This document shows, piece after piece, positions 447-28,702 of a stretch of DNA of 64,000 nt. The DNA comes from Tubulanus polymorphus (taxonomy: Eukaryota; Animalia; Nemertea), in contig NC_134030.1 in NCBI RefSeq assembly GCF_964204645.1, positions 6,552,778-6,616,777 on the forward strand. Reading direction: 5' to 3'. A model generated the notes under the pieces. That model saw only the letters and a program-made list of their open reading frames with translations, did not search any database and had not been told where the DNA came from. A program made the translations under genes and the position numbers. Every line of letters begins with the position of its first letter. Position 1 is the first letter of the stretch.

Positions 447-495
447 ATGGATATTATGTACGCGTGTTTATTTGTATTTCTGTGTATCACTAAAG
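447..495 (+). CDS. Gene 1 exon 1, signal peptide MDIMYACLFVFLCITK
   Basis: cgccATGG Kozak context, hydrophobic peptide, phase-1 donor AG|gtaatt; joins exon 2 in frame (GLLLVDA/QQ). Confidence 0.85.
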
Positions 496-3400
496 GTAAT
501 TATCAGTTTCTGTTGAGAGTCCTCCATTAATTTTTCTTGATGATGTAAATTACTAATGTCTATTTATTAATGGATGAGACCTGTTTTTCTGGGATATTTT
601 GCTTACTATTTTGGGGCACATACCTCATTTATGTCTTAACAGAATGCCAAAAATCGCGGACAACAACTGAATATCCGATATTATTCCAGTTCTGTACCGA
701 TTAGATGGATTGGCAAAAAGACTCATTAAGTCCAGTTGAATGAGAGAGAAAATCCTCCATTTTGTGAAATTTCTTGGATTTGAACATTGTTACCATGCCT
801 ACGCCACCCTGATTTAGTTGTTGAGACCCCACAAGAAAAATAACTTCATTTTGTAGGCATGGTGACAATGTAAAAATTCAAGAAATTTCACAAAATGGAG
901 CATTTTCTCTCTCATTCAACTGGACTTTAGGAGTCTTTTTGCCAATCCATCTAATTGGTACAGAACTGGAAATATATCGGATATTCAGTTGTTGTCCGCG
1001 ATTTTTGGCATTCTGTTAAGACATAAATGAGGTATGTACCCCAAAAAGTAAGCAAAATATCCCAGAAAAACAGGTCTCATCCATTAATAAATAGACATTA
1101 GTACTACGAGTTACGACAGCAAAAAACGTCCCACCGCATTATTAACAATTTCTTGAGTTGAGAGTAACATTGGATTCATTTCGACAAGATAAATGAAGGG
1201 AAGGCCAAAAATTAACGACAACACCCCTCACAACAAAAATAAACGCAGGCTCTCACAAATTCAAATTAATTTTTTCTTATTTAGAAGGGCCTATTTAGAA
1301 ACACCTAGCTATAGGCCTAATTTTAGATAGGTATTCCTGCAATAATAATTTTGTATGATGTACGGTAAATACAAAATAGCGTAAACACATTGTTGCAACT
1401 ACTAAGCCTATGGTATTTATCTACCGTTATCTTTAGCCACACTGATTCCTGCCTCTGAAATTTGAATCTTAAAACTACAACTATCCTGGAATTAACCTAC
1501 ACGATTCTGCGGTTAGGTGTCCAAAATGGTTATGTAACCTTACTATCATCCTAATCCTTAGATTAACACTATAGCCGTGAGGAATCGAAAAGGGACCGAA
1601 ACTGCAGTTTGACCAGTTGGGCGCAGTCATAAGGCCCAGGGTCCATACACAAAGATCGAACTAGCGAAGTGTATTTAATTGCAAATTGTGGCCAATTTTC
1701 ATCACAAATCCCAATTTATCCTGGCGGTGGTAATATGGATCCATAAACTGACCATCAAAACTGGTGCCACGTAGTAGCAGTCTTCTGAGTGAAACTTTCT
1801 TTTCTTTTCAGGGCTTCTGTTAGTAGACGCGCAGCAGTTGACTGCCTCGGTACTAGTTTCTCCGCCGACGCAAATAAAAGGCGACAAAACGACATTGATA
1901 TTGACGTATGAACCAAAGTCGACACTGTCCACAAACATAAATGTTCAAATAAAGAAAGTTATAGTGTCGCCTAATAAGAATGAAATGGAAAACGTGGCAA
2001 CTTTTAAAGGAGCAAGTAATGTGCTGGATTCTAGTCCTAAGTTCAGTCACCTACAGCTTGAATCGGTTGATAGCAATGGCATTAGATTGAAGTTCCAGCC
2101 AACAAACTTTTCAGATTCAGGCTCTTATCAGGCAACATTTGTGCGCATGTCAGATTTTGATACATTCATGGCTGCGTTCAGCATAGATGTTCAAGGTAAA
2201 TGCAACCATACAGAAACCCATTCATTTGTTCATTCTTTTTCCCGTGCTTTCCTCAAATCATTTGAATCGGACTAATTTTGTGTTATTGAATGAACCCTGA
2301 AACAGAGTAGTTCGGTTGACAAATACAAATTCTAGTAGACTCGTGAACACCACTTCATCTTGATAAAGTATAAAATAATTTGTTATCGAGGCTGAAAAGT
2401 ATATTCTTCAATTGAATGTAAAATCCCACCCACAATTGTCGAAAGGCTAGAAGGTTTATTCAAAATACAAGAAATATTTCGGGTGGTTGCTACACATGCT
2501 TCTTCATTCTAAAAATCATTTTACATGCGGATATTATGATCTTACTGATTCATTGTTCAATTGAATCCATAATGATGAGTTGAACTTATATAAATCAGGT
2601 CGATAAAATTATTCACCCTCGTGGAGCTGGCTGCACCATCCATGCTGTCGCAATTAGATCTCTGAAGCTCATAAGATTTGTCTCTGTTTGTTTTTCAGCT
2701 TACCCCGGTAGACCGACGATAACCGTTAACAATCAAGTCGCTACCGAAAACGACAGTAACTTGATGATTACTTGCGTCGGAAACGTCGGTAAAACCGCGA
2801 CAACGGGAACCGTCCGTATGTTCACAAAGATGCAGTTCGAAACCGTGTTCAGGCAGATTCCAAACGGAGACGTGCAGACGCAGAGCGTGTTAAACCCGGA
2901 TGGAACGACAACGATCACCGCTTCAGTTTTCACCGGCGTCGTCACATATCAGATGAATAAGGCGATATATCGCTGTCAAACGGAAAATAGTTTATTAAGC
3001 GCGAACGAGGAACGTTACTCGGCTGACGTGACGCTGAATGTCCAATGTAAGTTTATGTTGGTATTTTTTTCAGGACAGTGTGAATTCCCCTCCTTAAGTG
3101 TACATTTTTGGCTATGTAACCCTTATAAACACGAGTAGAGTTATGAGTACTCGAGTAGCCAATTATTATTTTCTTTTTTGAATTGGGATCTGTGAGCTTT
3201 AAATAATAGGCTCTAATGTTACAGGAATTGCAAAACCCTTTAGAAATAGGGCACGATTTGTACAATTATATAGTAAGAGTACTCCACTAATCCGCCATTG
3301 TCATACCCTGCTACCGCTTCATAGATTGGTATCTCAGTTTGATTTACGTTTCTAATCATGAAAACACAGAATTCACTCATTAGCACTCAGGAATTTCACT

Positions 3401-6400
3401 ATGTAGTGTCAATTACTCCTCAGAAAATTGAGTGCTAATGGGTCAAATCAAACATCTTGGTGAAGTCGGGAATTTCATAAATCCTGTCGTGGTAGTTTTT
3501 TCTAAGTAAGAGTTTTAGTTGGTATCCCGACGACAAACAATAGTCCCAGGGATGCTTTTAAAATCAAGGCCACCCCCTCAAATGGAGACCTTTTTCAGTT
3601 TATCACTTGACGCTTGTAAAGTTATTTGATCGAATTGATGAAATTATTTAAGATGTGTAAATTGATTTTTCTGTTCGCAGATAGAGTACGCGATGTTCGC
3701 ATTACGCCCGTCGATACAAACGTGCCCCGCAATTCGAGGATTGTGTGCGTCGCTTCGGGTAATCCTGAACCGGCCGTCACGTGGGAGCGAATATCCGGAC
3801 CTGTATTCGCAGAGATCGCGCCCGGCGTGCTTCAAATACCGCTGACGGCACTGCCAGGAACGCACGAGTATCGATGTAATGCTAAAAATACGGTTAACGG
3901 CGGAGTGGCGGTCATCAATAAGTCTTACAAATTCAACATCACCGGTAAGTAATAATGATCACCAACAACGCCTCCTGTACGACAATCATGACACTACTGG
4001 CGCGAATGTAAACAGTTTAGTCACTAGATATCACGCCACACATCGCATCCTGATTACATCGAGGCATCTGTTGTTGTTTTTTAATAATACAAATTTACTT
4101 CCATAACATTCAATCTGTCACAAAAACAACCGTCGGACTCATCGAAACAATCATACTCGATAATAGGGGACAGGTTCTTCTGCGATGGTGTAGCTGTCAG
4201 TCCCCTCTTTATGCCTACCCCTCTAAGATAAAATCACAAGATCCAGTGGCTGATTTTGAAGAACTTGTCACAACCCAGAAGGGCAATTTGATGTTCAAAA
4301 ATATGAGGCGCACTACTGAACTGAAATGCCCCTACTTGTTGTTGAAAAAAAAATACGGGAAAAGGGCGCTCCAAAGATCCGATAGACTTGCGCAAATCTC
4401 CCTGGAGACTATAGCCATCCATATAAAGACTTCAGGTCTCTTGTGCGGAAACGCAGGCATTTTTAAAATGGAAATGTATGACAGTCTTTTACCTGAACCT
4501 GCAGGCATATTTTATATAGACATTTTATCGCTACTTGCGGAAAATCACTTCATGAAGTCTTCACCCATAAACAGGTGATTGATACTAGGAACCAAATATG
4601 GAAAAATATTCATATCAAAATGTCCGTCCGTGTGATAAACTGTTAGCTAATTATTATTGGCATTTTGACAGAAATCTGGCCGATATTTCGCGAATAGTAC
4701 GAATAAACGGAAAATTAGGTCATTTTCATCATCCTCGTTAATTATCATCACCGGGGCCTATACCAGCGCGAGTGCGATAATTATGTTGATTATCAATGAT
4801 GATAGGTCACGCATATTTAAGGGTTAAATGTCGCTTAACGAGATAGAGAGAAGATATTATTTATTAGGACAAACGTCGTAATTTCGTGTTAATTGAAATA
4901 TACCGAAATTAGGTAAGGATATAATTATGACTGAATAAACGTCATCATCTTTTATCATAATGTACTTGATGGTGAATCTAATTGATAGAGTTGGGCACTG
5001 TGCCGGCTATAAATCCTAGTCCCCGAATTCGTCTCTGGTTAAAATACCAGGCTGTTGACCTTGTCAGATACAGTAACCCACGCCTTACTCGGACGTGGTC
5101 AACTCTGACAAAAATCAGTTTGACTCTAATGTATTTTCATATCTTTAACTTGGATTTTGTTTATCTCAGACCAATTTTGCTGGTCCCAGTTTATCTCAAG
5201 TAAGGCATTTATTTTCAATCCTAAAGAAAAACTCAATTAGGAAATCTGTTAGTTTCAATCATATAGGTCTGTAGTATTAAGTATTTCATTTTAATGTGAA
5301 TTAATAGTATTTTTATAGTAATTGTCCTTGCTCTTGATGTGACATGTATTAACTGTGCCGTGTACACATACAACTATTCAAGTGAAAACCTGCCTTCATG
5401 CACACCGCTCCCGCGTACAATAGAATTTAGTACCGTTTTTACTGGTGAAAGAATGATTTAAGTACGAACAAAAATTTCGTCTATTGTTTCGCCTCTAGCA
5501 ATAGCAGGGGGGGGTTGCTCTGCTAAAAATACGTTCAGAGCTTGATCAAAATTTTTTTTAGGCGATTGTTTTCAAGTACCGGTACGTCATACGCTCGGGC
5601 AGATTTTAATGCGATATCTCGCGTTGGCGTCGATCAGAGCAATAATACGTTTCTTGTTTGGTATTCAGACTTTTGAATCGGACGTTTTATTGAAAATCGT
5701 TACCTCAGATATTCCGGCAGGTGTTCGAGTGTCTCTGTTCATAAATAATTATCGTATATACAAGTGGGACAATACTACTGTCCATGTGCGCGTCGTCGAA
5801 GTCCACACGTCAAGACAAACTGTTTTAATACCTACTTTATTATCTTATAGACGCTAGATTTGAAATAGTGTTGTCGATAGAGCGAAAACTGAATCGCGAC
5901 TAAAACCAAATTCATCCTTGAAAAATAGTATGCCCCCTGTAAAAATCCTGGTAAAAAAGTGACCACTTTCATAAAGACCTGGGGGACCTTCATTCTAGTC
6001 AAACAACATACTGTATCAGTTCAGAAAAAAGTGTTGTTATTGTAGATATTAAGATAATCTAAGTTCATTACTTCGGGACTGGTTAAATTCATTATATCTC
6101 AACAAGGGAAATGACAAATAGATGTGTTATTTCCTTTTTCAAAGTCAATCCTTGTTCGATTTGTATTCTGGCTGTTATCAGAAATCTGTTAGGCGTAGAG
6201 GGCAACAACTAATAAGAACTGTACTCGTTTATTTATACCAATTAGTCATTACTAGCCAGCAGTCATCACGTCCTTATCACGTCCTGTTCTGTGGTTCGGT
6301 CTTAAAACAAAACACAATTTTTAACTTAGGAGTAGACTTGGAAGTAAGATAACATTGTTGAGATTTTTGATATAGGCCTAATCATCATCCATAACAGGCC

Positions 6401-9400
6401 TCTGTAACCTTAATGTCATCGGGATAAGTCTGACTAATGTATTGTGGGGCGTTGTTCGGTAGTGAGTCATTCATTCATTCATTCATTAAAATGACTCTAG
6501 GACGCTCTGTTTGTGAGTCGTTGTATCGCAGTGCACCTGTGACTGGTTCACTATATTCTCCTCATCTAGTGTGCAGCAGATTAGATTTACTATACGGCTG
6601 TGAAACAAACATCGCAGTGCACCTGTGACTGGTTCACTATATTCTCCTCATCTAGTGTGCAGCAGATTAGATTTACTATACGGCTGTGAAACAAAACCAA
6701 TAGATCTAACTCAAGATAGCGACAAACCTTTTGAATTTTGCTAGGCCCCCTAGGACAGGGTGGACACTTACCTGGATATCCGGGAAAAGTCGAGGATTAA
6801 TCAGGGACTTTGGTAGAAAAAAAGCTATAAGTTAGAAATTTGATGAGATTGCTATATCACACGCAGAATCAAACAGTTTCCGTCTATGTCTTTATTTATA
6901 TGACTGTGTAAATCGATTGGTTCTTAGCAGATCAAGTCAGAGAAAAAGCTACGCCAATAAAGGTCATGCTGTAGGAGTACGTACCTCCTCAATCTTTTAG
7001 AAAGATTTTGGCCTCGTTGATCATTTGTAACTCAAAACCATTGAGGGATATATTTTTTCGTAGCATTCCAGTGAATTAAGTCATGATTTAAAGCAGCATT
7101 GTTTGTAGATTAGGTTTTTTTTTTCGTGCTTAAAGGTTCGACGTAATTTGCTGCGGGCTGATTTACATATAATGTGATTCAACAATGAGTTTGTGAACGG
7201 GAATCAAATTGTAAATATATGCTGATGACCTGTATACATGCACAACTACAGTACATTATCAAAATCAGTTCATTATATTCCCCGCAATAATCTGGAAATA
7301 CTTCACTACTCGGCAAAAGACAGAAGTACTCGGGGTATGGGAAGTTATATGATTTGAACGTTGGTGCCTACTATTTATTAGTGCTTTTGAGTAGTAGAGG
7401 TTATTTCTGAAAATCCTGTATGAATCCCACGAACTATTCTTAATACACACATCTTTAATCTTAATTGTAATATACGGTAACGCATGTCATACTCAAAACA
7501 CATACCGTCATTTACGTCTCTCTCGTATCAATATAGCACAAAAACATTCTAATGTAGAAATCTATCGGCAAAACGATAACAACAGTAGATACTCTCTCAT
7601 TTTAGACAGACACACTGCGTATGATCTTCGTTGCATGTTTTATTATTATTTTTTTTCATGTTCTCTATTATTTTCAGCCTTACCGACCACGATACCACCT
7701 CCAACAAATAATCCAACTACGCCAAAAACAGGTGATGAAAAATACGCGTGCAGTATGGCTGCGATTCGTCCCCGTCATTTCGGGGGTATTTTGATAACGC
7801 CGGATACGACGGAGAACTGCACATAACCTAGCTTCATACACCAAACATAAATCATCATAGGCCTACCTAAATTTGATAAATCTAAAAAAAATGTCATTTT
7901 CTTCTATCTGGTAGTAAAGATCTTGAAGATATTGTATAGGCCTAGTAGAGAAGTTTTTGGTGTATGAAGCATGATTTGTAGGTGTATTTAGTGTTTAGAT
8001 GGGTGTGGAAATGATCTTTTTAGCTGAATAACTTTCACCAGCACGCTTTCATCTTTTAAAGTCTATAACGCTTTACAATCATTAGAACCTCTATATACTC
8101 TATGTCTGCATTGATGTGTTTGTGCTTCTCTATTTCTGATGGTGATTTCGTTCAGAATTATTCTGGATTTTGTAATGTTTATGTATAGGTGATGGTTTAA
8201 TGGACGTATGGACATATACATCATACAACAGGGCCGTACAGATACCCACAACCTCCCGTCCAGGTCCAGTAAGCGTATCTTTCTAGCCGTATTTTTTTCC
8301 GCAAGCTATGTTAACATATTACCAACAAATTATGTCATCGGAATTCTGTGAAGGGTAGAAGAATTATTCTATGTTTTATTGGGCTCACTTTCGGCCACTG
8401 TTCTACGTGGTAATTCTAAACTCTGGACAGGGCATCTTGGTTCGAGATAAGACTCAAATATCCATACGAGAGAACTCTCGCAATAATTCAAAGATGTACG
8501 TGAGGTTCTTGAGGAAAAGAGTATATCATTTGAGTTATGGTTCGGCTAAAGACTATCAGCCATCATCAGGCGTACTCGTATTCATTAACTCAAGAACGTA
8601 ACATCTTTGGCCGATTTATTGTGGGATTTCTCTCATATGTTAACCTTACACGGATATTATCGTGTATCATCTCGACTTATCAAATATCCACGGATAAAAA
8701 ACACCAGCATTTATTCATGACCCAATAAATAGAACTATTTATATAACGGCGGGTATGGAAGAACATTTCGATCTCCCCTCAATCTGGTAGGATCAATGAT
8801 ATGTCAAGTGCGTCGGTTTCCTTCCTTGTTTCGACTCGCCTTTCCGCGTTGCGTTGTGACGACCCATTGAACAGTAATCGTAATCGATATATTCTATTCG
8901 TTTTGCCGGCGACTAATGCTACGAATGGCAATTAAATTCATTTCAGCCTTTTCAACCTCCGCCACTTTTCCATAATGAATACGGCGATATATGCGCGTGT
9001 TAAGCAATCGATTGATGAAAAATTCTCCGATATAGATCAGCCATTCGGAGTTAGAAAGATGATATGGGCCGAGGTGAATAGCATCCGCCCTGCCTTTATT
9101 TCCGCAGCGCCTAGAAACAAACTGCCGGAATTCAGGTGTGCGTATTTCACCACCCATCAAACAACAGCACTCATTAATATAACAGCGTTACAAATAATCA
9201 CTCCTTTTATACAGTACATAATGGTGTTTAGTCTGTCAACGAGAGTTTAATAACTCATTGTAACGAGTGTGTATCTAACATTAGCAGGTTCTCTATGGAA
9301 TTACATCATCGAGAGTGTTGTCTTGGAACAGGTCTTTAAGTTTCCACCCAGTTTGTTTCCTAGCATAGCGCGCTTTATTAGCCTACGAATTAACTGACAT

Positions 9401-12400
9401 AGTCTTGAATCTCTTACAATATTATAATCGCTAGTCTTCGATTTTGTGTAGACATAAGAAATAAGTGAAGATTTGTTCTCGTTATCAAGTAGTAATAGTA
9501 CTTGTCCAATGAACCCGCTCTATATTTTACATGCACTGTCTCTACGCATAGGTTGACAAATGGTTGAGGTATTCATTCAATGCTTGAGTAAACAAACCAA
9601 ACTCGAACACCTCACACATATTTCTCGGTATTGACCGCAGTTCACGGGGAGTTGCTCGCGAACCAGTTTCTCTTATTATACATCCATTGTCGATTTTTTC
9701 GAACACTTTCGATCACAACTTTCCTGTTATTTATGAATAGAAGATGAATGGAAATGTACACGAAAAAGAATCTAACGCATTTGCTAATTTTGGACTCGAG
9801 CTAAAGCTGGATGCTTTCAAAGTTTGATATTGGATTCAGTTGTTTTTTAGTACTAGTAGGGTTTGATATTACTATTAGTATATTCACCGCTGAACTAACC
9901 CTCCTGGCTTCAAAAGCATTCCGAGCACAAATTCTTATGTCATTTAAACAGTAACAAACCTAACAAAGATTTGCCTTAACTGGAAATACTCCACATATAT
10001 ATACATATATCTGTATGTATGTGTGTGTATATGTATATATGTATATATATATATACGTTCTTTTATTACCAGTTACTATATTAGATAATGATTTCGATAA
10101 CCACCACGCACCAAATACTAATAACACGATAAATCTATTGTCTCGCTGGAGAAATCTCTTTAAAATTCATGTTAATACAAATTCATTACTAGTTTATTCC
10201 AGGGGAGCTTTATGCTTAATGAATCAATTGAATCAAAAATAGGCGAATAACAATAATGATCGACATTCTACTAAAGAGTGCATATTCAGTTAGTTATGTA
10301 ATGAAACTGTAGGGGTCGCCACGTCCTGAGCTCGTCGTCGTTCCTAGGTTGGCGAATGTTCTGAATTCTCTGAATGCGTTGCTGTTCAGATATAAAATCT
10401 TGATTTCTTTGACGTCTGATAAAGCTATAGCATTATTGGCGATGAAAGCATTTGTTCTTTAGATATGGTTACTTGAAATAGGCTGTGAATATCTAATTGT
10501 CTGGATTAAATTCCGCATCGTGAAGCCAAAGGATGCGATATCTTCAAACATAGCGTCTTCGTGCCTAATGCATATTTTCTCTTGGCCTATATGTGTCATT
10601 AATTTTCAATTTTAGGCATCAGCTGAAACCATGCTACCGGTATATAAACTTAGGGAACCTTGTCATTTTCAATGACCCAAGATTAAAATCCTTGTATTCT
10701 GACTGAATTTGAATCGTGATGTTTTCTTTGCATTGGCAATTATCTATACTGTTAGGTGATAAGTGAAATCGTGTGATTTCTATATTCTGCGGGTATTTTT
10801 GGTTCCTTCCTCCGCCCAAGTATTCCCGGTATATAAAATATATATTGAATATATGAGATTGTCCTCTCTTCTGCTTACAGGAGGAAGTACTGGAGATGAT
10901 AAAGATGGTATGTATTTATGTACAGCATGCTTACACCCTGATTTCCTTTCCCCGATGACTCGTTTCTTTAAATCTAACACATTTTTTCACGTTCTTTAAT
11001 GAACGAACATTTTATTTGTTGTAAAATACGTTTTTCTAAAAATCATATCTGGACTACTGTCGATTTCGCATTAAATCGTTCCATTTTCATTTGTAAATGA
11101 TTCTCTTCGAAAAAATATTTTCGTGGCAGACATTTTTTGAAACATTAGTAATTAATTCTTCAGTTTCCCCGTTAATGCCAAGAAAAACATCGTAAAAGTG
11201 TTTGGTTTCACTCGTGAGTTGGCTGTATAAATAAGAATGGAATTTATAACTATACGTTCGATATGTATGAAAAATGTCCAGATATGAACGAACCGGATAT
11301 AATTGAAGATATTGACACAGCGGGTGATGATCCCTCATTCACCTCGGCAACTAGTCATTGTTTAATATGATAGTTTTTCTGAATGCCCTCGAAAGATGGC
11401 AGCACATGGATACGAAATTTACTTCTCGCACGGGAGAAGACTTCATTTAAACTATTGATATAGAATATAGATGAATCTGCGTACTGTATATTGAACTGAT
11501 GCTTATTCTACTATTTTCACCGGTCAACTTTCACTGTAGTGTTGATTTTAGTTTGTGGCATGTGCGAACTGTAATCTTCATCTTTGTCGCTAGGTGGTGC
11601 CACGTGTACGTGTGTATGTCGACTGATATGGCCACCAGGTAACACGCACCACACGTCGATTCTCTATTCACTGTTACTCTCTGTCAGTCACGCTATTCAA
11701 AATTCTGATGTCCGATTATTATTATTAACAAGCTATCTTATATACCGTAGAAAATCTTAAACCGCCGATAAATTCAGTCAAGACTGGGCGAGGCCATCGA
11801 TCAGAATTTTGAATTTTTAGTTCGATTCTCTTCTAGATAGTTATTAAATATCTTGAATATTATCTTTTTAGTTTTAGATTAGTATAAAGTGATTTCACGC
11901 ACTTACAGGAAACCTTTGATACTAAATCCTTTATCTAGTACGCTGTGTGTTAGGTGCGAGAGGTCGTCCATCATGTGCTGCCATCTATGTTGTGAATTAT
12001 TCTTTTGCGGCCATATTCTCGCAAAATTACTCCTCCCTTGAGCCTGACGTACTCAGCGCAGGGAAACACGGAAGCAAGAGACAGAAACATGTTTCCGAGC
12101 ATTTCCTCGTGTCGTGTACGTAAACAAGAAACATGATTTAGGGATCGATGTTTCCGAGATCGAACATGTTTGTTTCCATATTTCCCTGTTTCCGTGCCAC
12201 GCCTGGTTGGGCTCGATGCAGCGATTCAGACCCTGGGGCTGGTTGCATAGTCATGGCTTAGACTTAAGACCAGTCTAAGACCAACTAAGTTCTATAGCCA
12301 ATCTAACAGCTTAAGACCAGTCTTAAGATTTAAGACCACTTTTGGACTTAAGTCACAACTGTGCAACTTGCCCCAGGTGACATTGCAAGATTCTGGTATC

Positions 12401-15400
12401 GTATAGTGACAGTCTCATACAGCCATCAGGTTCAAATCTCTGCTGAGAGGATACTTTTTCAATACTATAAGATACATTATGGAATATGTACTCTTTGTTT
12501 TGCACTTCAATACATGTTTGATAATAATAATAATAATACATTGTCCCCCTATCATTCTTGAATCGTACTGACTTCCATTAATTTTGAATTTATAACAGAT
12601 GATGATGCCCGACCTATCATGTATTATCATAATTTCGAAGCTGGTACTGTAAACATTGAAATCTACTCGGGCTATGTTTTCTCTTTATGTTATCTTGTAT
12701 TTTCTATTCAATGCCGAGCTGCGTACGCAAAATGCTACCTATAATACTAAAGTTTATAACGATAGGTAACGAATTGCTGCTACTTTGCATGGATTTCTTT
12801 TATTTCAATTGAAATAATGATGAAGATTCTTGCGAATTTCATTTTATTTAGAATTTCAAGCCACATTTTAGCAGTCTTTCAACTTATTTATTGTTTTTAT
12901 CTGACCATCTTAAAATCAGAAATCTTACCGGTATTTTTTAAAGAATTTCTTTATTTATGATCTTTCACATTTCATGATGCATGATTTCAAAAGAATATTT
13001 TGTTTAAGATAGACTTAAGCCCAACATCCTCTCTAGTTCATTCCGGTAGTTTTATGAATAATTGAATTAGTTTTTCATTGATGTATATATTCATATATGG
13101 TCCTCACGATTTCACACAGTAACTTAAAGGCATTTTGCACAACGGTGTTGTCCGCAACAGGTTTTAGGGGGGCAGCCATCCCTTTCATTTTTACATCTTC
13201 CCCTCTGCAAATCAGCCACCCCTTATAAAATATCTGCTGCCCCTAAGAGAGTAGATGTCAATATTTGATCTATGCTGATAAACTGCTTTGAAATATATGT
13301 GAAAAATAGATGACTAAATGAAAATTTAGCCCTGCTGCTTCAGCAGCCACAATTTTATGATGCAGACCCTTTAAAATTCCAGCATATGGAAAACACGGAA
13401 CATGTGTCCTGAAAAATTGCCTTTATTTTAAGACTTTACGCTGTCTTAGGATTATGAACGTTTTAAATAGCCGCCAGCATTCATTATTTACATCGATTTT
13501 GTTTTGGTTTCTATTTTAGGTACAGTTTTGTACGCTTCAATAGGCGGTGTATTGGGAGGTTTAGTTTTGGTGGCTCTCATTATTCTAATTATATACTTCT
13601 GTTGTATTCGGCGTCGTAAACAGCCCCCGTTTAACGAAGATCAAGAAAAAGGGTAAGAAATCAGTTTGAATTTTTCTATCCTTTCCTGATTTGCCATTCA
13701 ATCATCCAACACAAGCTCACGCTAACAGTCTCTTCATTGGTCTATTAGACCGCCCAAGTTTTCTTGGGCAGATAGGTGACCGCTGGGCGGCCACCTGTCC
13801 GGCCGGTCAAGAAATCTTGAACGGTGTCAACAGGGTTTGTGTAGGCGTGAGCTTCGGCATGAGGCAATCGAACCCTGGTAAGCAAGGATGCATTTAATAG
13901 GCTTCGTATGTATTGTATTCGCTCTATTTCTGTTTATTTGTAGAACCATGGCCAATAATAACGCTCCCGTCGGTAAATATGATATTGATATGGACGAAAA
14001 GCCAGCAACCGATGTAAGTATGAAACGTTGTCACCTGTTTTCTCCCTCCCTAATAATCTTTCCTCCTGACAGGAGTCGGATTGATATCAGAAATATGAAA
14101 TACTAATGTAGAATCGTGGAAGATTTTAACAATCTGTATAAAATCATGGAAAGGTGTGAAAAATTTACGAAAAGTGTCTCATCAAAATAGTTTGATCCCT
14201 TTTTGCAATATACTGTGGTGCTCCGGAATATGCTGTGGGATTTATCCAGCGCAGAAGCTGTGGATAAGTTTGTAAGAAATTTTAAGTTTTCATCCGTACA
14301 GATTGTGATCAGTAACTGCTTGTTTTTGTTAACTACAAATTTCCAAATACCTTGAAGAAATAATGCGAAAAAATCCTGGTATTTTCTTGTGATAAATGAA
14401 AGCCAATTGGAAGCAGTTAAAATAATGTGAAAATTCCAGAGTTCATCAATCTGACTCCTGCTACATGAAAATCACGATTTAAGCATGAAAATCTGATTTA
14501 CCTCTAATCCGTTTATATATACGAACGTATAGAACATCGCTGTAGTTCCCGGTACGGTGCGATTAATATCGAGCAGTCGATTTACGAGCGGCGATTTCAG
14601 CGACCCGGGATTCAGTCATTATCAGTTATCTTCATCGCATCCGGGAGCGGGAGCGGTAGCTGCATCGACCTACGACTCGAACAGCGACGTACATAGCAGT
14701 ACGCACGACTCCAGTACGCAGTATAGCACGCGCGACTTGGTCGACGACGTCGACCCGGAGGATAACGACGATACACCGACGGTCAGTTACACAAACTTAC
14801 CGAATGATCCGTCTCCCGAACCGGAGAATGTTGCGCCAGCAGGTGGAAATGAACGGGACGATGTCGATAACACTACGGATGCCGCTGCTAGCGACGCTGC
14901 TAGTACGAATGATTCCTTCACCGAAACCCCGGACATGGGTCGACGACGCACTTTATTATACAACTATTTAGTGTAAATGTTTACTCATTGGTTTTGCTGC
15001 GGTGTCCGGGAATTTTATCGTCAAGTTTTCAGCAGTTCGCTCTTTTCAGTCGTTCTTTAGTTTTTGTAGCTAGCTTCGCTTATGGACCAGTTATATAATT
15101 TGGTTTAGATGTGAACCTAGCTCAAAAATAGTAAAAAACTTTTCAATGAAAACTGTCTATTGTACTTTATATCATGATTCAGATTCGCTAAATTTCATTC
15201 TTTTTAATTCATTTTCTTCATTTTCATCTTTCTTCGTTTTGTTATTCTTTTTTTGCAGTCTGTTTTTTCAAAAAATTATTTTTTGTTTGCATTGTTTTTT
15301 ATTATTTCTAGGAGCCATTATTGATAACCGAAGTGGTGAACTAAGACTGTGCCTGGCTTGCGTCATTCTATCTATATATCATTGTTTGTATGTTCCATCC

Positions 15401-17098
15401 ATCTCTCAAACATATCCGAGGATTAAATGAAATTGTTTGTTTGCATTCAAAAATCTGCATCCGAGAATGATAGTCGAGCTTGATTTTGCTCAGTTTTCAA
15501 TGCATGATCACTCGATCTCTGACCTCCGTTCAGTTTCACCTGAATCCATCTCTGAATGTATATCTTCTATGCAAGATCTCTGATATAATCTAATACATCT
15601 ATAATCTAGTACATCTTTTTAAGCAGCCATTCTTTGCTGATGCTGCGGCAAAACAAACAGTCTCATTTCTTGTATTGGCTTTCTAGTAACGGCTTCTGTA
15701 GCTATAGGGTATAGGCGCCTGTCAGCTAACATACTTAGTTCATTTCATCTACCCTTGTTAGCGTTTTGAACTTTATGGAATCTTGAGACTCTGCCACAGT
15801 ATAGAGGCCCAGGTGAACAGCTTTTGTATTTAGCTAATAAGAAGTTGTGTTATGCTTTAGTATGTGATATACATGTATAATGAGAATTTTGATTGCCTGA
15901 GTATGTCATTGCGTGGTAATACTGTACAGTCAACCGGTCTACTAGAGCAGTGGTTTCACTGGCGCCATCTAGTTCAGAATTCTGCAAGGGAAGATGAATT
16001 CATAAAGATAATTAACATAAAAACTACCTATCATTTCATCGTTAAAACGAACACAACGCCACATAGATGTAAATCAAGTAACTTAGGTTCAGGTCACATT
16101 AATCCTATAAAGATAACGATATTCATGTATAAATAAGATGTTTTCATCCGGATTTATTGAATTGCTTCGTGCAGTTTATTGTCGTGTGTATTTTTTGCAC
16201 TTTATTTTATAGTTAGTAATTTTCATGAGGCTTCGCGCACTACTAACTTACCGTAAACTCAGAGCGGATCTTTTCGAAACTGAAATCGCGGAGCGATGGC
16301 AGATCATATGAACGTGAAATTTCGGGGCGCATAGCAGCAGCCAAGTTTCAGTTCACCATTTCGCGTGATTACGTTAAAGCTATAATGATGATGATGGATG
16401 AAATAAGATATCTTCACTTTCAGGTTTTGTCTATCATATATAGAGATATGGCGCTTATGTATTTCTTGTGTAGATTTTGAGAATGATAAACGATGTAGTG
16501 CTCGTGGACATCGCTCTCTTCTAAAAGGAAAAAACTGCTCGTCGAATAGTAGATTCCTACCTTTATCGCAGAGGAACCTCGAATCAAACAATATTTGACC
16601 CAAAAAATAAGAAAATTTTATTCATCTTTGATCAGTTGTAAAAACCAATTTACACCATGAATTGAGGTTCCGCTGTATCGGCATGTTGTATATTCATAAA
16701 ACTTGACGATGTACGGTAGATTTCCCCTTACTCCGATTACATTGGGGAAGTAAAATGGTTTTAGTAAAAGCAAATTTCTTCCAAGCACGATCAGCGTAGG
16801 AAGGAATCTACTGTACGGACTATGATGTTACCATCAAAATTTAATCGATCCTTCTAATTTTATCGCAAACTAAAACATAAGGAGCCATTGTTCCATTGTA
16901 GTTGCTATACTACCCTTTCGCGTTGTTTTATCATCACAAGCGTTACGACAAAGTTTTTGTTTCTCATTTCAGCCCAAACATCTAAACGCCGAAAATCTGG
17001 TGTACGCCGATCTGGCGATGGACGACACGCCGCGCAGTCGAAAACCAATACAAGTAATAGACGATCGCGTGGATTACGCCGATATTCGCCGAGTATGA
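447..17098 (+). CDS. Gene 1 (spliced span): type I IgSF receptor/adhesion protein with signal peptide, 3 Ig domains, S/T/P stalk, TM and ITIM-bearing tails
   Basis: Phase-consistent GT-AG chain: 447-495, 1812-2195, 2699-3046, 3681-3944, 7678-7731, 10881-10907, (12599-12643), 13520-13652, 13944-14013, then 14533-14976 or 16973-17098. Confidence 0.9.
553..1101. mobile_element. Foldback MITE with ~250-bp terminal inverted repeats and TA target duplication (Tc1/mariner-type)
   Basis: 553-802 is a near-perfect reverse complement of 853-1101 (CTAATGTC...GACATTAG), with a 50-bp spacer and TA on both sides. Confidence 0.9.
1812..2195 (+). CDS. Gene 1 exon 2, V-set-like Ig domain with no Cys or Trp
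   Basis: ttttcag acceptor, G|gtaaat donor, phase 1-1; IRLKFQPTNFSDSGSYQA matches the Ig E-F strand pattern LxI...DSGxYxC except for the Cys. Confidence 0.85.
2699..3046 (+). CDS. Gene 1 exon 3, Ig domain 2
   Basis: AYPGRPTI...ITCVGNVG...YRCQTEN...LNVQ; tttttcag acceptor, T|gtaagt donor, phase 1-1. Confidence 0.92.
3681..3944 (+). CDS. Gene 1 exon 4, Ig domain 3 (C2/I-set)
   Basis: CVASGNPEPAVTW...YRCNAKN; ttcgcag acceptor, G|gtaagt donor, phase 1-1. Confidence 0.94.
6525..6695. repeat. Perfect tandem duplication, 86-bp unit x2
   Basis: atcgcagtgcacctgtg...gtgaaacaaa at 6525-6610 and again at 6611-6695. Confidence 0.95.
7678..7731 (+). CDS. Gene 1 exon 5, Pro/Thr mucin-like stalk (ALPTTIPPPTNNPTTPKT)
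   Basis: Long pyrimidine tract + cag; 54 nt, phase 1-1; donor gtgatg. Confidence 0.8.
7831..7970. repeat. Small inverted-repeat (MITE-like) element
   Basis: gcttcatacaccaaa (7831-7845) and tttggtgtatgaagc (7956-7970) are a perfect 15-bp inverted repeat. Confidence 0.55.
10881..10907 (+). CDS. Gene 1 27-nt stalk microexon (GGSTGDDKD)
   Basis: ctctcttctgcttacag acceptor, G|gtatgt donor, frame-preserving phase 1-1. Confidence 0.75.
12233..12376. mobile_element. Harbinger-like MITE with internal cttaagaccagtc repeats
   Basis: Ends ctggggctggttgcatagt / actgtgcaacttgccccag with CWG-type flanks. Confidence 0.65.
12599..12643 (+). CDS. Gene 1 candidate 45-nt cassette exon (DDDARPIMYYHNFEA)
   Basis: actgac branch-like site, aacag acceptor, G|gtactg donor (weak), phase 1-1 and open. 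Confidence 0.5.
13520..13652 (+). CDS. Gene 1 transmembrane exon (GTVLYASIGGVLGGLVLVALIILIIYFCCIRRRKQPPFNEDQEK)
   Basis: Hydrophobic helix with GxxxG, then CC and an RRRK stop-transfer; ttttag acceptor, GG|gtaaga donor (phase 1 to 2). Absent from the ORF track. Confidence 0.93.
13944..14013 (+). CDS. Gene 1 juxtamembrane cytoplasmic exon (TMANNNAPVGKYDIDMDEKPATD)
   Basis: tttgtag acceptor, gtaagt donor, phase 2 to 0. Confidence 0.85.
14533..14976 (+). CDS. Gene 1 alternative terminal exon A: long acidic Ser/Asp tail with VSYTNL and LLYNYL, ending YLV*
   Basis: Phase-0 tatag acceptor in frame with a GC-rich 147-codon ORF; pyrimidine tract is poor. Confidence 0.72.
   Translation, partial: NIAVVPGTVRLISSSRFTSGDFSDPGFSHYQLSSSHPGAGAVAASTYDSNSDVHSSTHDSSTQYSTRDLVDDVDPEDNDDTPTVSYTNLPNDPSPEPENVAPAGGNERDDVDNTTDAAASDAASTNDSFTETPDMGRRRTLLYNYLV
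16547..16813. mobile_element. Tc1/pogo-type MITE
   Basis: TIRs tagtagattcctacct / aggaaggaatctactg followed by TA. Confidence 0.55.
16973..17098 (+). CDS. Gene 1 alternative terminal exon B: PKHLNAENLVYADLAMDDTPRSRKPIQVIDDRVDYADIRRV*
   Basis: Strong tttctcatttcag phase-0 acceptor; tandem LVYADL / VDYADI motifs. The track translated a different frame here. Confidence 0.88.
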   Translation, partial: PKHLNAENLVYADLAMDDTPRSRKPIQVIDDRVDYADIRRV

Positions 17099-18462
17099 GT
17101 TTGTTCTGCCTTGCCCCCCGAAAATCCCTGGATAGAAAAAACTATCGACAAGTTTCACTCAGACGCCAGTTCAAACTGTTATCGATGATATACTAATGAC
17201 AGCTACGTGTATATGTGTCTGCAGTCAGTCGCATTTTTTTTTTTTATACGAACAGTTTTTATATTGGAAAAGAACGAATACGCGGAGAAAGGAACGGGTC
17301 ACGCCCTGAGAATGATTCAGCGATGCGTAGATCGAGATCAGCGAGATGCGAATGAAAGACGTCTGATGAATGGACCGACACCGAACGGGTTCAGAAATCG
17401 ACACGTTTGTTTTAAAACTTAAACTTCCGCCATGCGAAAGTCATAAATCATTCTGTGCTATGCATGTTTAAGATATAAGTAGTATAGTGTATATGAATTG
17501 AACGACAGCCGAATCGTTTATTAACACTCTCTCGGCTGTCTGTCCGGTTCTATTTTTTATAACCGGTAAAAAACAAACAACATTTCGTCCACTAATTCCA
17601 CAGTTGAAGAATAAATGGTTTAATTATTTTTGAGAAAATTTGACACATTCCTAAATGTTCTTTGACCTCTGATGAATTATATTTTTAACAGGTTTGTCTT
17701 GATTTTGATAAATCCGTTGTCGCGACATTTCGATGTTGACCGACACAATTTTAGCAATAATTACTAGGAATTCATCGTTTTGATAATCTGACTGTGACAT
17801 CGATTCTAGATCATTCATTTGTCCCTTAAACGTGGACACTAAATATAAATATTTGTAGTTGCAGACATATTAACGATGCTACTCCAACATGTCTTCATTC
17901 GTCATTGATTTTATACTGACTGCTGAAGTTAGGTATATGTTTTTAACAAAATAAAACTCGATAATATGATAGTTACTCAAATTTTCAATATGATGTCAAT
18001 TCAATAGCTATGTTTGTATATATGACTGATGCTTCTAGTATGAACTGATAATTTGAGGAGAATGATTTTGAGAATACATTCCGTTGCCATCATGTGCCTA
18101 CAATTGTGCAGGTAGATTTTGTTACTGATTCTGCTCCAACCCCGGGACAACCCTTGTCACGAGTAGTCCTTATTTCATAGCTATTCGATATTAAACGGTA
18201 ATCACATTCAATTCAGTAAAACAGATTTGCAGTGAAATTCAATTTTATGAAAAAAAATATGAAATAGCGTTCATTTATTGGCGCAGTCTTCCTAAACACT
18301 CAAAACATGAATTCTTGTCGTAGAAGAAAAGAAAACTACTTTAAACTCACTCATTTCATTTCATTGACATCTGTATAAAGTGAAAACTGTAAATACTAAC
18401 TATATTTTGTATAAAATCAGTATTATTTTGTTTATGGTCATGTTTACTGTATATTATAATGA

Positions 18463-21329: not shown

Positions 21330-22457
21330 TCACGGATAACAAGTATAGTCAATTTGGCTAACAAAGACTCCACTCGTGCTTTGCTTTGGTTCCTCTGATT
21401 TTTGATAGAAACTGCATAATTTTGATGCTCCATTGAATGAAACTGCGGAGCAAGTTCTGAAGTTCATAGTACATTCATTAGCACAGCGGAATAGTGAAGA
21501 AGTGATAAAACTTCGGGTTTTCGCCACACCACCACTGACTTTCTGCGAGTAGGTGTAACCTATGTGAAAATACGGTAAACCTTATACCTCAGTTTTAGGC
21601 AAATATTTTCTGATTTCGATACTTGTATGCTTCTGCTGTGGGATCGTCCAATCTCAGAGAGAAGCCGGGTATAGGGTGCGAACGGAAGGTGAACTCTGCG
21701 ATCGACTAACGATAGTTTAACAGGAGCATACAACGTACGTAATTTTACCTCTCTGAAAATGCAAAGCGACCTCAACTTTGACCTCACATAATGATAAATG
21801 TCCTGTTGATTTTGGCTTCGTGATGATCAAGTAACGTCCCGTGGCATAGGAACAAACAAACCTCTTCGTTTGACCATTTCGAAAAGGATTTGGTTCGTAG
21901 TAGCAAAGGTCTCCACGTGGTACTGGTGGTGCCGAATGATTCGATAGTATGATACTAAATTTCTTCAATCGGTAACCTGTAATCAATTCAAATGCCTAAC
22001 TATCGAAACTCCCGGTTTTGGACAAAACATAACTAACATAACTTTTTCTTTGAAATATATCTTACCGCAACAATCGAGCCTGCTGCTTATGGACACAGAT
22101 TTGATCGTGCGAGCAATTCCTAGATCTATCTGCCACCAGGGATCCGTTTCGGGTGTGACACATGCGCATGTTCTTGGATTTTTATCAAATGCCAATTCAG
22201 CTGCTCCTAAATAGCGAGTAGGTCCATATCGTTTACTGAGTGATGCTGATTTACCAATCAAATCGATGAAATAGCGTTCACATTCGATGACTATATTGAT
22301 AAGATATGAGCAGTACATAGATATGTAATCTTATGTATAAACAACATGATATTATCATTTTCACTTAAAATAATGATTATTGTTTCGTTATGATAATTGA
22401 TTTCTAACCTGGTAAAATGGAGACAAGACAAAACACGACACCGACTATCCGAGACAT
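21330..22457 (-). CDS. Gene 2: secreted F-type lectin (fucolectin/FTP) domain + PAN/Apple domain protein
   Basis: Exons 22457-22409 (signal MSRIVGVVFCLVSILP), 22290-22066, 21976-21749, 21559-21330, all phase 1. Motifs: AFDKN, PWWQIDLG, RLDCCGYR, GRYL, LSLCEV, and PAN CxxxC..C..FN...C. Confidence 0.93.
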
Positions 22458-23736
22458 TACTCCACACGTAATATGAAGCGACTAGATACCATTATGAAGA
22501 AACAAACAAACGGTTTTGTTTCCGTTTCATTTCATTCAAAATATTTTGACAGTTAAACGATATCGAATTGTGCTAGATATTTCAACACGCAGGATGCAAC
22601 CGTTTTGAAAGCAACCTGTTATGAGGAGGGCAACCCTTGTAGATACTTTACATACTCAGACGTGCAGGAGATTAAAACCAATCATATGTAAATTTGAAAG
22701 ATTGAAAAAGAAATTGAAATGTGCTCTCACTAGGGACCACCGTCAGATGTGAGGAAATACGCAGCTAAACTAGAACTAGAACTAGAACTCAAATAACAAC
22801 GAAATCTTAGAATTAACTACTGCTGTTCCAGTGGAACACGCGGAAAGTTCTGTCCTTCTGATCACCAAACAACAATGTCTCTTTATCGTTGAACGAATCG
22901 CGAATCGCGAATCACGAATCATAGCCGCAGAGTCATCTTTCAGCTTATCATAATGACGAGACATTAAAATCCGATCAACATTTAACTACTGTGATATAAG
23001 ACTGGAAAAATCTATTTGGAACACTAATGTACAAAACGAGTATTACAATTGATGAAAACCTGGTGTCGCAGTTATTACGCATCTCAACAATCCATGTACT
23101 CAAAGAAATTAATCCGTTTCAAATCCTTGATAGATTAGACAATCAATTATAACAGTGATATAACAATCGCATGATATTCCTCTATTAGGAAAATCGAAGA
23201 AAAACCGGGAGAGCCGTGTGGCGACCCCTGGTGCTGATTCAAGATCCAGAACTCTCTCGCACTCCGCTCATCTACAGGATGTCACATACCTAACATTCAT
23301 GGAAATCCAAGTAGCACTCATAAAGAGGGTAAAATGTAGTCCCGATACAGTCAATGATAAGCACGTGTAAATAATACAGCTATAACGTAAATTTTGTAAT
23401 TGCGTCACAAAAGTAACTATTGGTTGAATCTGGTTACGTTAGATTATATAATTCATAAATGAAGTGTATAAGTTTGCAATATAGTGCTTTATCTAAAAAG
23501 GATAATCATCTTGTTCTGCAAAGCAGCATTGATTACAATTATCAAATTAAAAAAATTCGACAGTAACACACAAAAAGAGAACGGAAAATTCCCACCCCTA
23601 GACTATATGAGCAAGATACAACCCCTAAAATACAGCCTAAATACGGCAGCAAAGAACGGTTAGTTATATTCATTAGCTCAACAAAATTGTGTAGGAGTGA
23701 TAAAACATCGAGTATGATACCATGGATACTTCATTT

Positions 23737-25013
23737 TCACGGATAACCAATATAGTCAATTTGCCTGACAAAGACTCCGTTCATATTCGGATTTGGTTTC
23801 TTTGATTTTTCAAAGAAACCGCATAATTTTGATGCTTGATTGAATGAAACCGCGTGACAAGTTCTGTAGTCTCTGCTGCATGCATCTGTGCAGTGAAATA
23901 GTGAAGGACTGATAAAACTTTGAGTTTTCGCCACACCACTGCTGACTTTCTTCGAATAGGTATAATCTACAAGACGAGAAGACAGAATATGGTTCGCTAT
24001 CTCCGGAAAATTATGGACACTTTAAAGACCTTTTAACATGAATAATATTTGGTAGAAGAAATAATTTTGTGAATGAACATGTAATCAAGATGATGCGTTG
24101 ATTGTAAATCAGCCGTCGCGAGGAGAAATTTGGACGAAAAGACTATCCATTTTTGAGTCTCAACATGATTTCCAAGTTGTGAATATTCGAAAAGCTTTGA
24201 ATCTTTTTTACGCATGTGTTCTAATTACCTCTGATCTGTAAAGGTGCACTTTCAACTTTGATCTCACATAATGATAAATCCGAAGTTTCTTTTGGCTTCG
24301 TGATGATCAAGTAACGTCCCATAGCCAAAGAACAATCCAATTTCCTAGTTTCGGCATTTTTAAATGGATTTGTTTCGTAATAGCAAAGGTCTCCGTTTGG
24401 AATTGGTGGCGCTGGATAGTCCGTCAGAATTACACTTAATTCCCTCAATCGGTCTCCTGTAAGTAGTTAAAATTTCAAATATAGGCTACGTAGTATATGT
24501 AGCGATATTAAAAAAGCGATTAATCTTTGGATGGAATAAGACAATCTAAAATATTTCTTACCACAACAATCGAACCTGCTCGTTATGGACACTGATGCAA
24601 CCCTATATGCAATTCCTAAATCTATCTGCCACCAGGGATCCGTAGTGCTAGAGGAGTAGGCGCATGTTCTTGGATTGTTATCAAATGCCCATTCGGCTTC
24701 CCCCAGAAAGTCATTGATTTTTCGCATTTTGCTGAGTGATGACGATTTACCAATCAAATCGATGTATTGAACGCATTCAATGACTGTATTGGTCAAGGAC
24801 GAATAAAATATCAAAAACATATTTTCCGTTAAAATTACCGATGATATTTCATGAATTATATTTGGTTGATATATTATCATCTTATTCGCAAATAACTAAA
24901 CGTGGTATTTTCATTTTCACTTGAAATAGATTAATTTTTTCCAATGTTAAAATTAATTTCTAACCTGTTAAAATGTAGACATAACAAATCACAGCACCGA
25001 CTATCCGAGACAT
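23737..25013 (-). CDS. Gene 3: tandem paralog, F-type lectin domain + PAN/Apple domain protein
   Basis: Exons 25013-24965 (MSRIVGAVICYVYILT), 24783-24562, 24456-24229, 23966-23737; same intron positions as gene 2; RFDCCGDR, LSLCEI. Confidence 0.93.
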
Positions 25014-26737: not shown

Positions 26738-28510
26738 CTATAGGATCAGTGTGATCGGTGTCTCGGTTGTCGCCCCTGACGACATATCACGCATATGCAT
26801 CTGTGAGTGGATATCTTCGTGTCGGCGATGGGTCGACCTGTAGTTGAACGGAGGATGCCCGCCGCCAGGAATCCCGACGTGCGGTATTTCAGACCTGTAC
26901 TGGTTATAACCGGGGTGAAACATATCTCCACCAGTCGCCCACGGGTTGAAATTAACGTGTCTGAATTCGTGGTCGGCCGGTTTCGTCGTGCGAGAGTCCC
27001 ACGTATCACCGTGTACGTTACTGGTTAAAAGATCACTATCCACGGAGCTCAGTGTGCTGATGGACGGCCTTCGTTGACTTTTGAATTTGGATGCGTTTGT
27101 CATTTCTTTCATGAGATTGGGTACAAATTTGGCTTGGGTGTTCGGATTTGGCATTGATATTTCTGGTTTGGGTTCGTTGCGGTGGACAATGCCCGGTTTC
27201 TGAGATGTGGTAGGTGGTGGGTTTCGGGGTTTAGTAGCTGGAGGGTTATGGATGATGGGCTGTTTTCTCGGTTTTGGTTTTGGAGGTGGTGCTGACTGAG
27301 GTTTAGATTCGTTTGTACTCATTAATCGTTCTAACGTAGTGTTAAAACTTGTGTCAAATCTGGGTATTCTTCTGGATTGTTTCCCACCGTTAGTCCCTCC
27401 TAGTCCTGATGGATTGACAGGCTCCGCAAAGTGTTGAGCCCCCATCGGAAACTGACCGGCCGCTGCGGCAGCTGCTGCGGCATACTGCGGAGCAAACCGA
27501 GATGGACCAGGCATCGCATACGGTCCAGCGGGCATATATCCCCCAAACGGTGACTGCATAAATCCAGCCATAGGAGCGAATTGTGCATTGAGCGGTGGTC
27601 GGCGTATCGACTCGTCGTAATCCTGATGTCGGGTAAACCCGGGCAATTCCGGTGAATCCCGATTAATCTCTTCAATGTCATCTTCCCCGTCTGCGTCATC
27701 TTCGGTATCGGGGTTATAGGCGGCGTTATAGGAAATACCCCGAGTTCTGGCGTTCCATTCAGCCACGTGTTCGTGTAGCATTGCTTCGTTGAACATTTTC
27801 TTATATTCGGTGTAGTTAGCGTACCCAGGTGGTACCGGGCCAGGAACCATGCCCGGGTACCAGCTCATCATCTGACTCATCATTGCCGGATTCAACCGTT
27901 GCCCGAACATATTGAACGGATCGGTCGGGGTAAAGAATCTATAATCGATATTCGGAAAAGGCATGAAATTTCTGAAATCTCGAGGATCCATTACGACCCC
28001 TTGGTTGTGAGTGTTGCCTTCATCCAGTTCGCGCTCGATTGCATCGTAATCCGTGTCCAACAGATTCCCGTATTCGTCGTGGGCGTGTGAATCCTGCGAA
28101 TCTTGAGAATCCTGCTGATTCAACTGTCCCCCTTCACCGAGGAACCAATTCCCGTTACCCTGTTCTGACGGGTATAGAGTCTGATCGCGACGGGTCAAGT
28201 GGTGATCCAGCACCTCTGACGCTAACTGTTGTTGCCTCTCTTTCGCCGCCTGTTTTCTCACCGAATCCGATTTCACGATCGGTTTCTTGCCCTTTTTATT
28301 CTTGTCTTTCTTGTCCGATTGTCGTTTTCTGTCCGATTTGCGGATGTGGGTGTTTCGTTGTAACGTCGTGCCTTCGTATGGCTTAAAAGTGCTCATATCG
28401 GGTCGTCCTGTACAGCAGGGTAGGGTACACTGATGTCCAGCGGGATCGTGGGCAAAAACGCTTCCATCGTCACCGTAATACACGTCATGGCCGCCACCGT
28501 GCTTCCCTCT
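26738..28510 (-). CDS. Large terminal coding exon (~590 aa), low-complexity Pro/Met/Tyr/Gly-rich, probably disordered; alternative echinoid tail or separate gene
   Basis: 1.77-kb GC-rich open frame after a ttttgattttcag phase-0 acceptor; ends ETPITLIL*; minus-strand AATAAA at 26071-26076. The track's Met at 28588 lies inside a MITE. Confidence 0.85.
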   Translation of the reverse strand, partial: RGKHGGGHDVYYGDDGSVFAHDPAGHQCTLPCCTGRPDMSTFKPYEGTTLQRNTHIRKSDRKRQSDKKDKNKKGKKPIVKSDSVRKQAAKERQQQLASEVLDHHLTRRDQTLYPSEQGNGNWFLGEGGQLNQQDSQDSQDSHAHDEYGNLLDTDYDAIERELDEGNTHNQGVVMDPRDFRNFMPFPNIDYRFFTPTDPFNMFGQRLNPAMMSQMMSWYPGMVPGPVPPGYANYTEYKKMFNEAMLHEHVAEWNARTRGISYNAAYNPDTEDDADGEDDIEEINRDSPELPGFTRHQDYDESIRRPPLNAQFAPMAGFMQSPFGGYMPAGPYAMPGPSRFAPQYAAAAAAAAGQFPMGAQHFAEPVNPSGLGGTNGGKQSRRIPRFDTSFNTTLERLMSTNESKPQSAPPPKPKPRKQPIIHNPPATKPRNPPPTTSQKPGIVHRNEPKPEISMPNPNTQAKFVPNLMKEMTNASKFKSQRRPSISTLSSVDSDLLTSNVHGDTWDSRTTKPADHEFRHVNFNPWATGGDMFHPGYNQYRSEIPHVGIPGGGHPPFNYRSTHRRHEDIHSQMHMRDMSSGATTETPITLIL

Positions 28511-28562
28511 CTGAAAATCAAAATATAAATCTATGAATTCTATGCACACTTGAAATATGATA

Positions 28563-28702
28563 CAGTGAACCTCGCCGAACTGAGACATGACAACAACGAA
28601 ATCATTTTCTGATTTTCCTTAACGTATTTTTCAATAGGATTTACGCTTCACTTGGACCAATTGTGTCGGTCCCAGTTTGTCCGAGCTAGGCGAGGTATAC
28701 TG
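28563..28702. mobile_element. pogo/Tigger-like MITE with TA target duplication; relatives at about 5071-5207 and 53074-53215
   Basis: TA-CAGTGAACCTCGCC...GGCGAGGTATACTG-TA; the three copies share a gaccaatt..ggtccc core. Confidence 0.75.

Follow-up and report, generated by a model that had tools for sequence, protein, structure and literature searches.

The window analysed here, a stretch of 64,000 nucleotides from the ribbon worm Tubulanus polymorphus (contig NC_134030.1, positions 6,552,778 to 6,616,777 of the forward strand, in the 268-Mb RefSeq assembly GCF_964204645.1), carries on its plus strand the gene LOC141906898, whose product is listed in RefSeq as an "uncharacterized protein". 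Analysis of the sequence supports, in silico, that this product is a type I membrane receptor composed of a signal peptide, three immunoglobulin (Ig)-like domains, a short Pro/Thr stalk, one transmembrane (TM) helix and a 79-residue cytoplasmic part. The last coding exon (exon B) encodes the recorded cytoplasmic end, termed tail B, which bears two ITIM (immunoreceptor tyrosine-based inhibitory motif) sequences. The last intron contains an unannotated open reading frame (ORF A), which a preliminary description of this DNA had taken for a second, interchangeable tail (tail A). We consider it probable that LOC141906898 encodes a single-copy Ig receptor with tail B as its sole documented end, that this end would dock the phosphatase SHP2, and that ORF A is not a co-equal tail.

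RefSeq holds three isoforms of LOC141906898, X1, X2 and X3 (XP_074652462, XP_074652463 and XP_074652464; 484, 475 and 466 aa, respectively), all of which are pipeline models and fall into one protein cluster. A translation comparison revealed that the exon coordinates read from the DNA reproduce X1-X3 exactly, at every residue. Exon 1 (447..495) carries the start codon together with the initial portion of the signal peptide (MDIMYACLFVFLCITK), and ends in a phase-1 split codon. Exon 2 (1812..2195) encodes the V-like Ig-like domain 1, with the motif DSGSYQATF and without a cysteine pair, exon 3 (2699..3046) encodes domain 2 (Cys170-Cys237), and exon 4 (3681..3944) encodes domain 3, which is of the I-set/Ig_3 type (Cys283-Cys326). 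The stalk includes two small exons, both of phase 1-1. The Pro/Thr cassette exon at 7678..7731 (ALPTTIPPPTNNPTTPKT) is present in X1 and X2 and skipped in X3, and the 27-nt mini-exon at 10881..10907 (GSTGDDKD) is present in X1 and X3 and skipped in X2. The Ig and stalk exons are all of phase 1, the customary pattern in Ig genes. The TM exon (13520..13652) encodes the TM helix (residues 366-396 of X2) and an RRRK stop-transfer signal. Exon 7 (13944..14013), preceded by ttgtag, encodes the cytoplasmic segment TMANNNAPVGKYDIDMDEKPATD and ends in the phase-0 donor GAT/gtaagt. The terminal coding exon B (16973..17098) follows a strong acceptor (gtttttgtttctcatttcag) and comprises 41 codons and the stop codon TGA (17096-17098). 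In a pattern scan, the first AATAAA downstream of this stop was found at 17610..17615, a candidate poly(A) signal that would imply a 3' untranslated region of about 0.5 kb.

The differences among X1-X3 are confined to the two small stalk exons. The documented splicing makes the extracellular stalk 9 or 18 residues longer or shorter and leaves the tail unchanged, with donor 14013 joined to exon B in all three isoforms. Retention of intron 7 would extend the frame on the plus strand by 30 codons (14014-14103), up to a stop at 14104-14106, and give a truncated tail without any ITIM.

The canonical cysteine pair is present in two of the three Ig-like exons. Domain 1 gave no Pfam match. An exhaustive HMMER search of its exon against 1.84 billion representatives yielded one true match, a 475-aa protein that is the gene product itself, and the sole outside match was a 1674-aa Ig-repeat protein, aligned around the DSGSY motif. 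Domain 3 matched the Pfam families Ig_3 (4e-5) and I-set (2e-3), both under the gathering score, and its best sequence matches in the PDB are the I-set domains of PTPRS, contactin and IgLON. For the TM exon, Pfam gave a weak match to the transmembrane-juxtamembrane segment TM_ErbB1. A single-sequence AlphaFold2 model of the ectodomain has a mean pLDDT of 43, with domain 3 as the only confident domain.

Searches of the 268-Mb genome with tail A, tail B and the exon of Ig domain 3 each located this locus only. The one other Ig match, a weak one at C7:18.28 Mb (40% identity), was considered as a paralogue candidate and rejected, as it lies in a giant, perlecan-like gene in which laminin-EGF and numerous Ig repeats occur. 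The gene there (C7:18272000-18301999) comprises over 20 Ig exons besides laminin-EGF-like ones, and resembles perlecan or hemicentin by eye. No orthologue was found with the exon of domain 1 among the 1.84 billion representatives, and word searches among proteins of 261-831 aa returned the gene alone, both with the whole protein (no other match at E<=0.001) and with the cytoplasmic tail (no other match at E<=10). LOC141906898 is a single-copy gene and not part of a polymorphic family, with relatives elsewhere not detectable in these searches.

The tandem ITIM of tail B and its putative partner

Two motifs were found in tail B: LVYADL (16997..17014, plus strand; Tyr445 of X2) and VDYADI (17069..17086, plus strand; Tyr469 of X2), the latter followed by RRV-COOH. 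Both tyrosines of the tail fit the ITIM consensus S/I/V/LxYxxI/V/L (PMC11085718, PMC9546547) and are separated by 24 residues. This exceeds what residue shuffles of the tail give, in which at least two ITIM-like motifs arise at P=0.002. The whole 79-residue cytoplasmic part of X2 has three tyrosines, Tyr445 and Tyr469, which fit the consensus, and Tyr423 (KYDID), which matches no motif. The tail B peptide is unique in the genome. A receptor of the ITIM class has at least one cytoplasmic ITIM, and tandem-SH2 engagement calls for two of them about 20-30 residues apart, an arrangement that is present in tail B; the type I topology and the Ig-like ectodomain expected of such a receptor are likewise predicted here. 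The recorded tail is a textbook tandem ITIM by its sequence, and the reading as an ITIM receptor is supported in silico.

As in PZR/MPZL1, the product of LOC141906898 is predicted to combine the architecture of a type I Ig receptor with a short tail that closes with two ITIMs, spaced by about 22-24 residues. The PZR peptides are VIYAQL and VVYADIRKN, with ESVVYADIRKN as the C-terminal ITIM peptide (PMC11085718). Comparison of the C-terminal ends, VDYADIRRV-COOH in LOC141906898 and VVYADIRKN-COOH in PZR, revealed agreement in the YADIR core and in the distance of this core from the C-terminus. The spacing of the two tyrosines is 22 residues in PZR, 23 in PECAM-1 and 25 in PD-1, and the 24 residues of tail B fall inside this range. 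However, PZR has one P0-like V-set domain, whereas the ectodomain of LOC141906898 consists of three Ig-like domains followed by a spliced stalk. In addition, no homology to PZR/MPZL1 was detectable with the tail alone at E<=10 in the 261-831 aa size class, within which PZR falls. Neither of the two hallmarks of the PZR/MPZL1 family, a single P0-type V-set domain and homology, was found in LOC141906898. Because no homology is detectable and the ectodomain differs, the resemblance between the two sequences is best read as convergence on a tandem-SH2 (SHP2) docking site.

PECAM-1, SIRP-alpha and CEACAM1 also share with LOC141906898 a multi-Ig ectodomain, a single TM helix and paired tyrosines in ITIMs or immunoreceptor tyrosine-based switch motifs, which in these receptors recruit SHP1 or SHP2, but no homology to them was found. 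The tail of CEACAM1 is altered by splicing, which switches its ITIMs on or off, whereas the documented splicing of LOC141906898 concerns the stalk only. The Alr proteins of Hydractinia are invertebrate members of the Ig superfamily (IgSF) with unusual V-like domains and ITIM-consensus tails (ITIMs and immunoreceptor tyrosine-based activation motifs), some with alternative cytoplasmic tails, and SHP homologues are present in the genome (PMC9546547). LOC141906898 resembles them as an invertebrate Ig receptor with a V-like domain and an ITIM-consensus tail, in an organism that encodes SHP homologues. In contrast to this singleton, Alr is a large, polymorphic and clustered family, and the two have no sequence relationship.

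The worm itself has a gene for a tyrosine phosphatase with tandem SH2 domains. Exons for SH2, SH2 and PTP domains lie in that order on the minus strand of contig C7 at 4.119-4.125 Mb (within C7:4117000-4126999), and one of them has matches to human PTPN11 (1e-42) and PTPN6 (2e-29). The likeness extends to the C-terminal motif YTNIKYS, and the predicted product is a clear SHP2 orthologue. A second, more diverged SHP-type gene, a paralogue with the order SH2-SH2-PTP, was found on the plus strand at C7:19.10 Mb (within 19097500-19107499), with a match at 2e-14.

We propose that, upon engagement of the ectodomain, a Src-type kinase would phosphorylate Tyr445 (LVYADL) and Tyr469 (VDYADI). The doubly phosphorylated tail B could then bind both SH2 domains of the worm SHP2 orthologue, and this bidentate binding would relieve the autoinhibition of SHP2 and activate the phosphatase. 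PZR/MPZL1, PECAM-1 and SIRP-alpha signal by the same tandem-SH2 docking route. The preliminary description had seen in this locus a candidate inhibitory self-recognition or adhesion receptor system with two tails. The ITIM receptor is supported in silico, with its type I Ig architecture, the tandem ITIM in the recorded tail and the SHP2 orthologue; the two tails are so far not supported. For self-recognition there is no support, as the gene is single-copy and not of a polymorphic family, so that gene number and clustering lend it nothing.

The gene was already annotated, as uncharacterised, and the present reading of it is conventional. In vertebrates, ITIM-type signalling is well described for receptors of immunity and adhesion; in other organisms it is, to our knowledge, known mostly from motif spotting. 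LOC141906898 offers a clean spiralian test case, with a single-copy receptor, a PZR-like tandem ITIM and a conserved SHP2 orthologue. The question it addresses is whether bidentate docking of SHP2 is an old bilaterian module that has been repeatedly acquired by unrelated Ig receptors.

The open reading frame in the last intron

ORF A (14533..14976, plus strand) is an unannotated frame of 147 codons in the last intron, with the stop codon TAA at 14974-14976. Its product would be acidic and Ser/Thr-rich, with a net charge of -18 and YLV as the last residues, a sequence that could be a candidate class II PDZ ligand. The frame starts directly after tatAG at 14533, in phase 0, and this acceptor AG is the first AG after a CTAAT branch-point-like site. 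Two ITIM-like motifs, VSYTNL (14782-14799) and LLYNYL (14953-14970), account for two of its six tyrosines and are separated by 57 residues between the tyrosines; in residue shuffles, two or more such motifs occur at P=0.019. VSYTNL fits the ITIM and the Grb2 (YxN) consensus alike. On re-reading the DNA, all sequence statements of the preliminary description, namely the coordinates, the motifs, the YLV end and the tyrosine spacings of 24 and 57 residues, were borne out.

The composition of ORF A is exon-like. Its GC content is 0.53 versus 0.34-0.36 in the flanking intron, and it has no in-frame stop versus 4-9 stops in each of the other five frames. After dinucleotide shuffling the frame stays open in 0.34% of cases. 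The three-base periodicity (p=2e-5) is like that of the true exons, versus p=0.4-0.65 in intron controls, and the ratio of observed to expected CpG is 1.69, which is also exon-like. Because the GC content, the open frame, the periodicity and the CpG ratio are all exon-like, ORF A is not a chance frame in an AT-rich intron. The coding marks are accompanied by compatible splice signals; the poly(A) signal is doubtful. Both its DNA and its peptide are unique in the genome, by which an origin as a repeat or transposon was rejected, and an exon duplication giving rise to tails A and B was rejected as well, since there is no similarity between the two. Judged by these features, ORF A appears to be coding now, or to have been so until recently.

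No protein matching tail A was found by word search among those of 81-257 aa, and a feature search with tail A gave no usable match. The isoform with tail A, expected at about 572-590 aa, was not returned by the full-protein search over 261-831 aa, which gave the tail-B cluster only; this isoform would have been caught because nearly all query words are shared. An annotated or assembled product with tail A was accordingly absent from these protein searches. Most likely, ORF A represents an exon that is used rarely or under certain conditions, or one that was retired recently, and not a co-equal second tail.

Alternative readings of the tail

Several points weigh against the single-ended SHP2-docking receptor that we favour. 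ORF A bears every intrinsic mark of a live coding exon, which fits poorly with an unused one, and a minor or stage-specific transcript with tail A would escape the protein records. No orthologue by which to gauge conservation of the tyrosines was found in the searches described above. The YADL and YADI of tail B match the YxxPhi sorting signal as well as the ITIM, and the phosphorylation of tail B and its binding of SHP2 are steps that we infer by analogy.

In a further reading, which we hold to be a minority possibility, ORF A would be a live tail under regulation, as a terminal exon or as a cassette, so that this spiralian receptor could switch between a compact, PZR-like tandem-ITIM tail that docks SHP2 and a 147-residue acidic tail. 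If true, a ribbon worm would have independently acquired splice-driven switching of the tail, of the kind seen in CEACAM1. The form of it given in the preliminary description appears unlikely to us: donor 14013 would be joined either to exon A, ended by intronic polyadenylation, or to exon B, so that the ITIM pairs would differ in spacing and A alone would have a PDZ-type end. Two tails of this kind, if true, would add regulated tail switching to the receptor. The start of ORF A exactly at the in-phase AG behind the branch-point-like site, its exon-like composition in a single open frame and its pair of ITIM-like motifs all agree with such an exon, and alternative cytoplasmic tails are known in Hydractinia Alr1 and Alr6 (PMC9546547). 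However, the acceptor of ORF A has a poor pyrimidine tract, and no AATAAA was found 3' of its stop, where one ATTAAA lies at 15422, 446 nt downstream. The motif fits just two of the six tyrosines of ORF A, each of the three RefSeq isoforms has tail B, and tail A is in no isoform or fragment of the protein collections searched (81-257 and 261-831 aa). The statement that donor 14013 can join either exon was not an observation, the junction 14013-16973 alone being recorded (XP_074652462-64), and the two interchangeable tails are not supported so far, with all three RefSeq isoforms ending in B and none with A in the protein searches. Likewise, the proposed retuning of ITIM spacing finds no counterpart in the documented splicing, which concerns the stalk alone. 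Since ORF A is coding-like, the two-tail idea is not refuted; equally compatible with the data on ORF A are a cassette spliced in frame and a retired exon.

It is doubtful, and slightly less probable than the two-terminal-exon arrangement, that the tail B motifs act as YxxPhi sorting signals. In that case the unphosphorylated motifs would bind clathrin adaptors (AP-2 and relatives) and steer the endocytosis or polarised delivery of an adhesion molecule. YADL and YADI fit this motif in its usual definition, domain 3 is nearest to neural adhesion molecules, and the phosphorylation of tail B comes, as mentioned, from analogy. However, both motifs have an aliphatic residue at position -2, which is required by ITIMs and dispensable for YxxPhi, and the pairing at 24 residues together with the PZR-like YADIR-x-x-COOH end are features of SHP2 docking. 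The sorting and the ITIM roles are not exclusive.

Least probable, and in our view improbable, is that ORF A serves as an in-frame cassette (14013-14533 and then on to 16973) that places a long acidic insert before the same tandem-ITIM end: its coding signature and two candidate donors in phase 0, as exon B needs, agree with it (TTA/GTGTAA at 14970/14971, giving 146 residues, where the frame closes two codons past the GT at 14971 and the stop lies inside the donor-like hexamer, and ACG/GTCAGT at 14781/14782, giving 83 residues), but both donors are weak compared with MAG/GTRAGT, in-phase GT is common, with eleven within ORF A, and the full-protein search over 261-831 aa returned no recorded protein with such an insert.

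Other features of the window

The intron between the TM exon and exon 7 contains a GC-rich patch (0.53) at 13690-13890 on the plus strand, with internal inverted repeats. It is a dispersed repeat with at least 50 partial copies of 71-88% identity on many contigs, often in head-to-head pairs, and looks like a miniature inverted-repeat transposable element. An Rfam search of the 13-18 kb region gave two sub-threshold matches only, both like small nucleolar RNAs, of which the snR13-like one overlaps this repeat (28 bits versus a gathering score of 47).

At 34591-54222, the minus strand carries a second IgSF receptor gene. Its exons encode V-set, CD80-like C2-set, Ig_3 and I-set domains (Pfam 1e-8 to 1e-11), and its TM exon lies at about 35003-35251; no relation to LOC141906898 is evident. 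On the same strand, a frame of 626 codons is open at 26741-28618 (GC 0.50). Its product, rich in Pro, Gly and Ala, looks disordered; it matched no Pfam family and lacks any ITIM-like motif, and the frame may be a long cytoplasmic exon of the adjoining IgSF gene or a separate gene. In addition, exons on the minus strand at 21333-24021 specify a pair of PAN/Apple domains (Pfam 1e-6 and 2e-7) and one domain of the F5/8 type C, galactose-binding-like kind (6e-8); their combination suggests a gene for a secreted lectin-like protein immediately downstream of the receptor.

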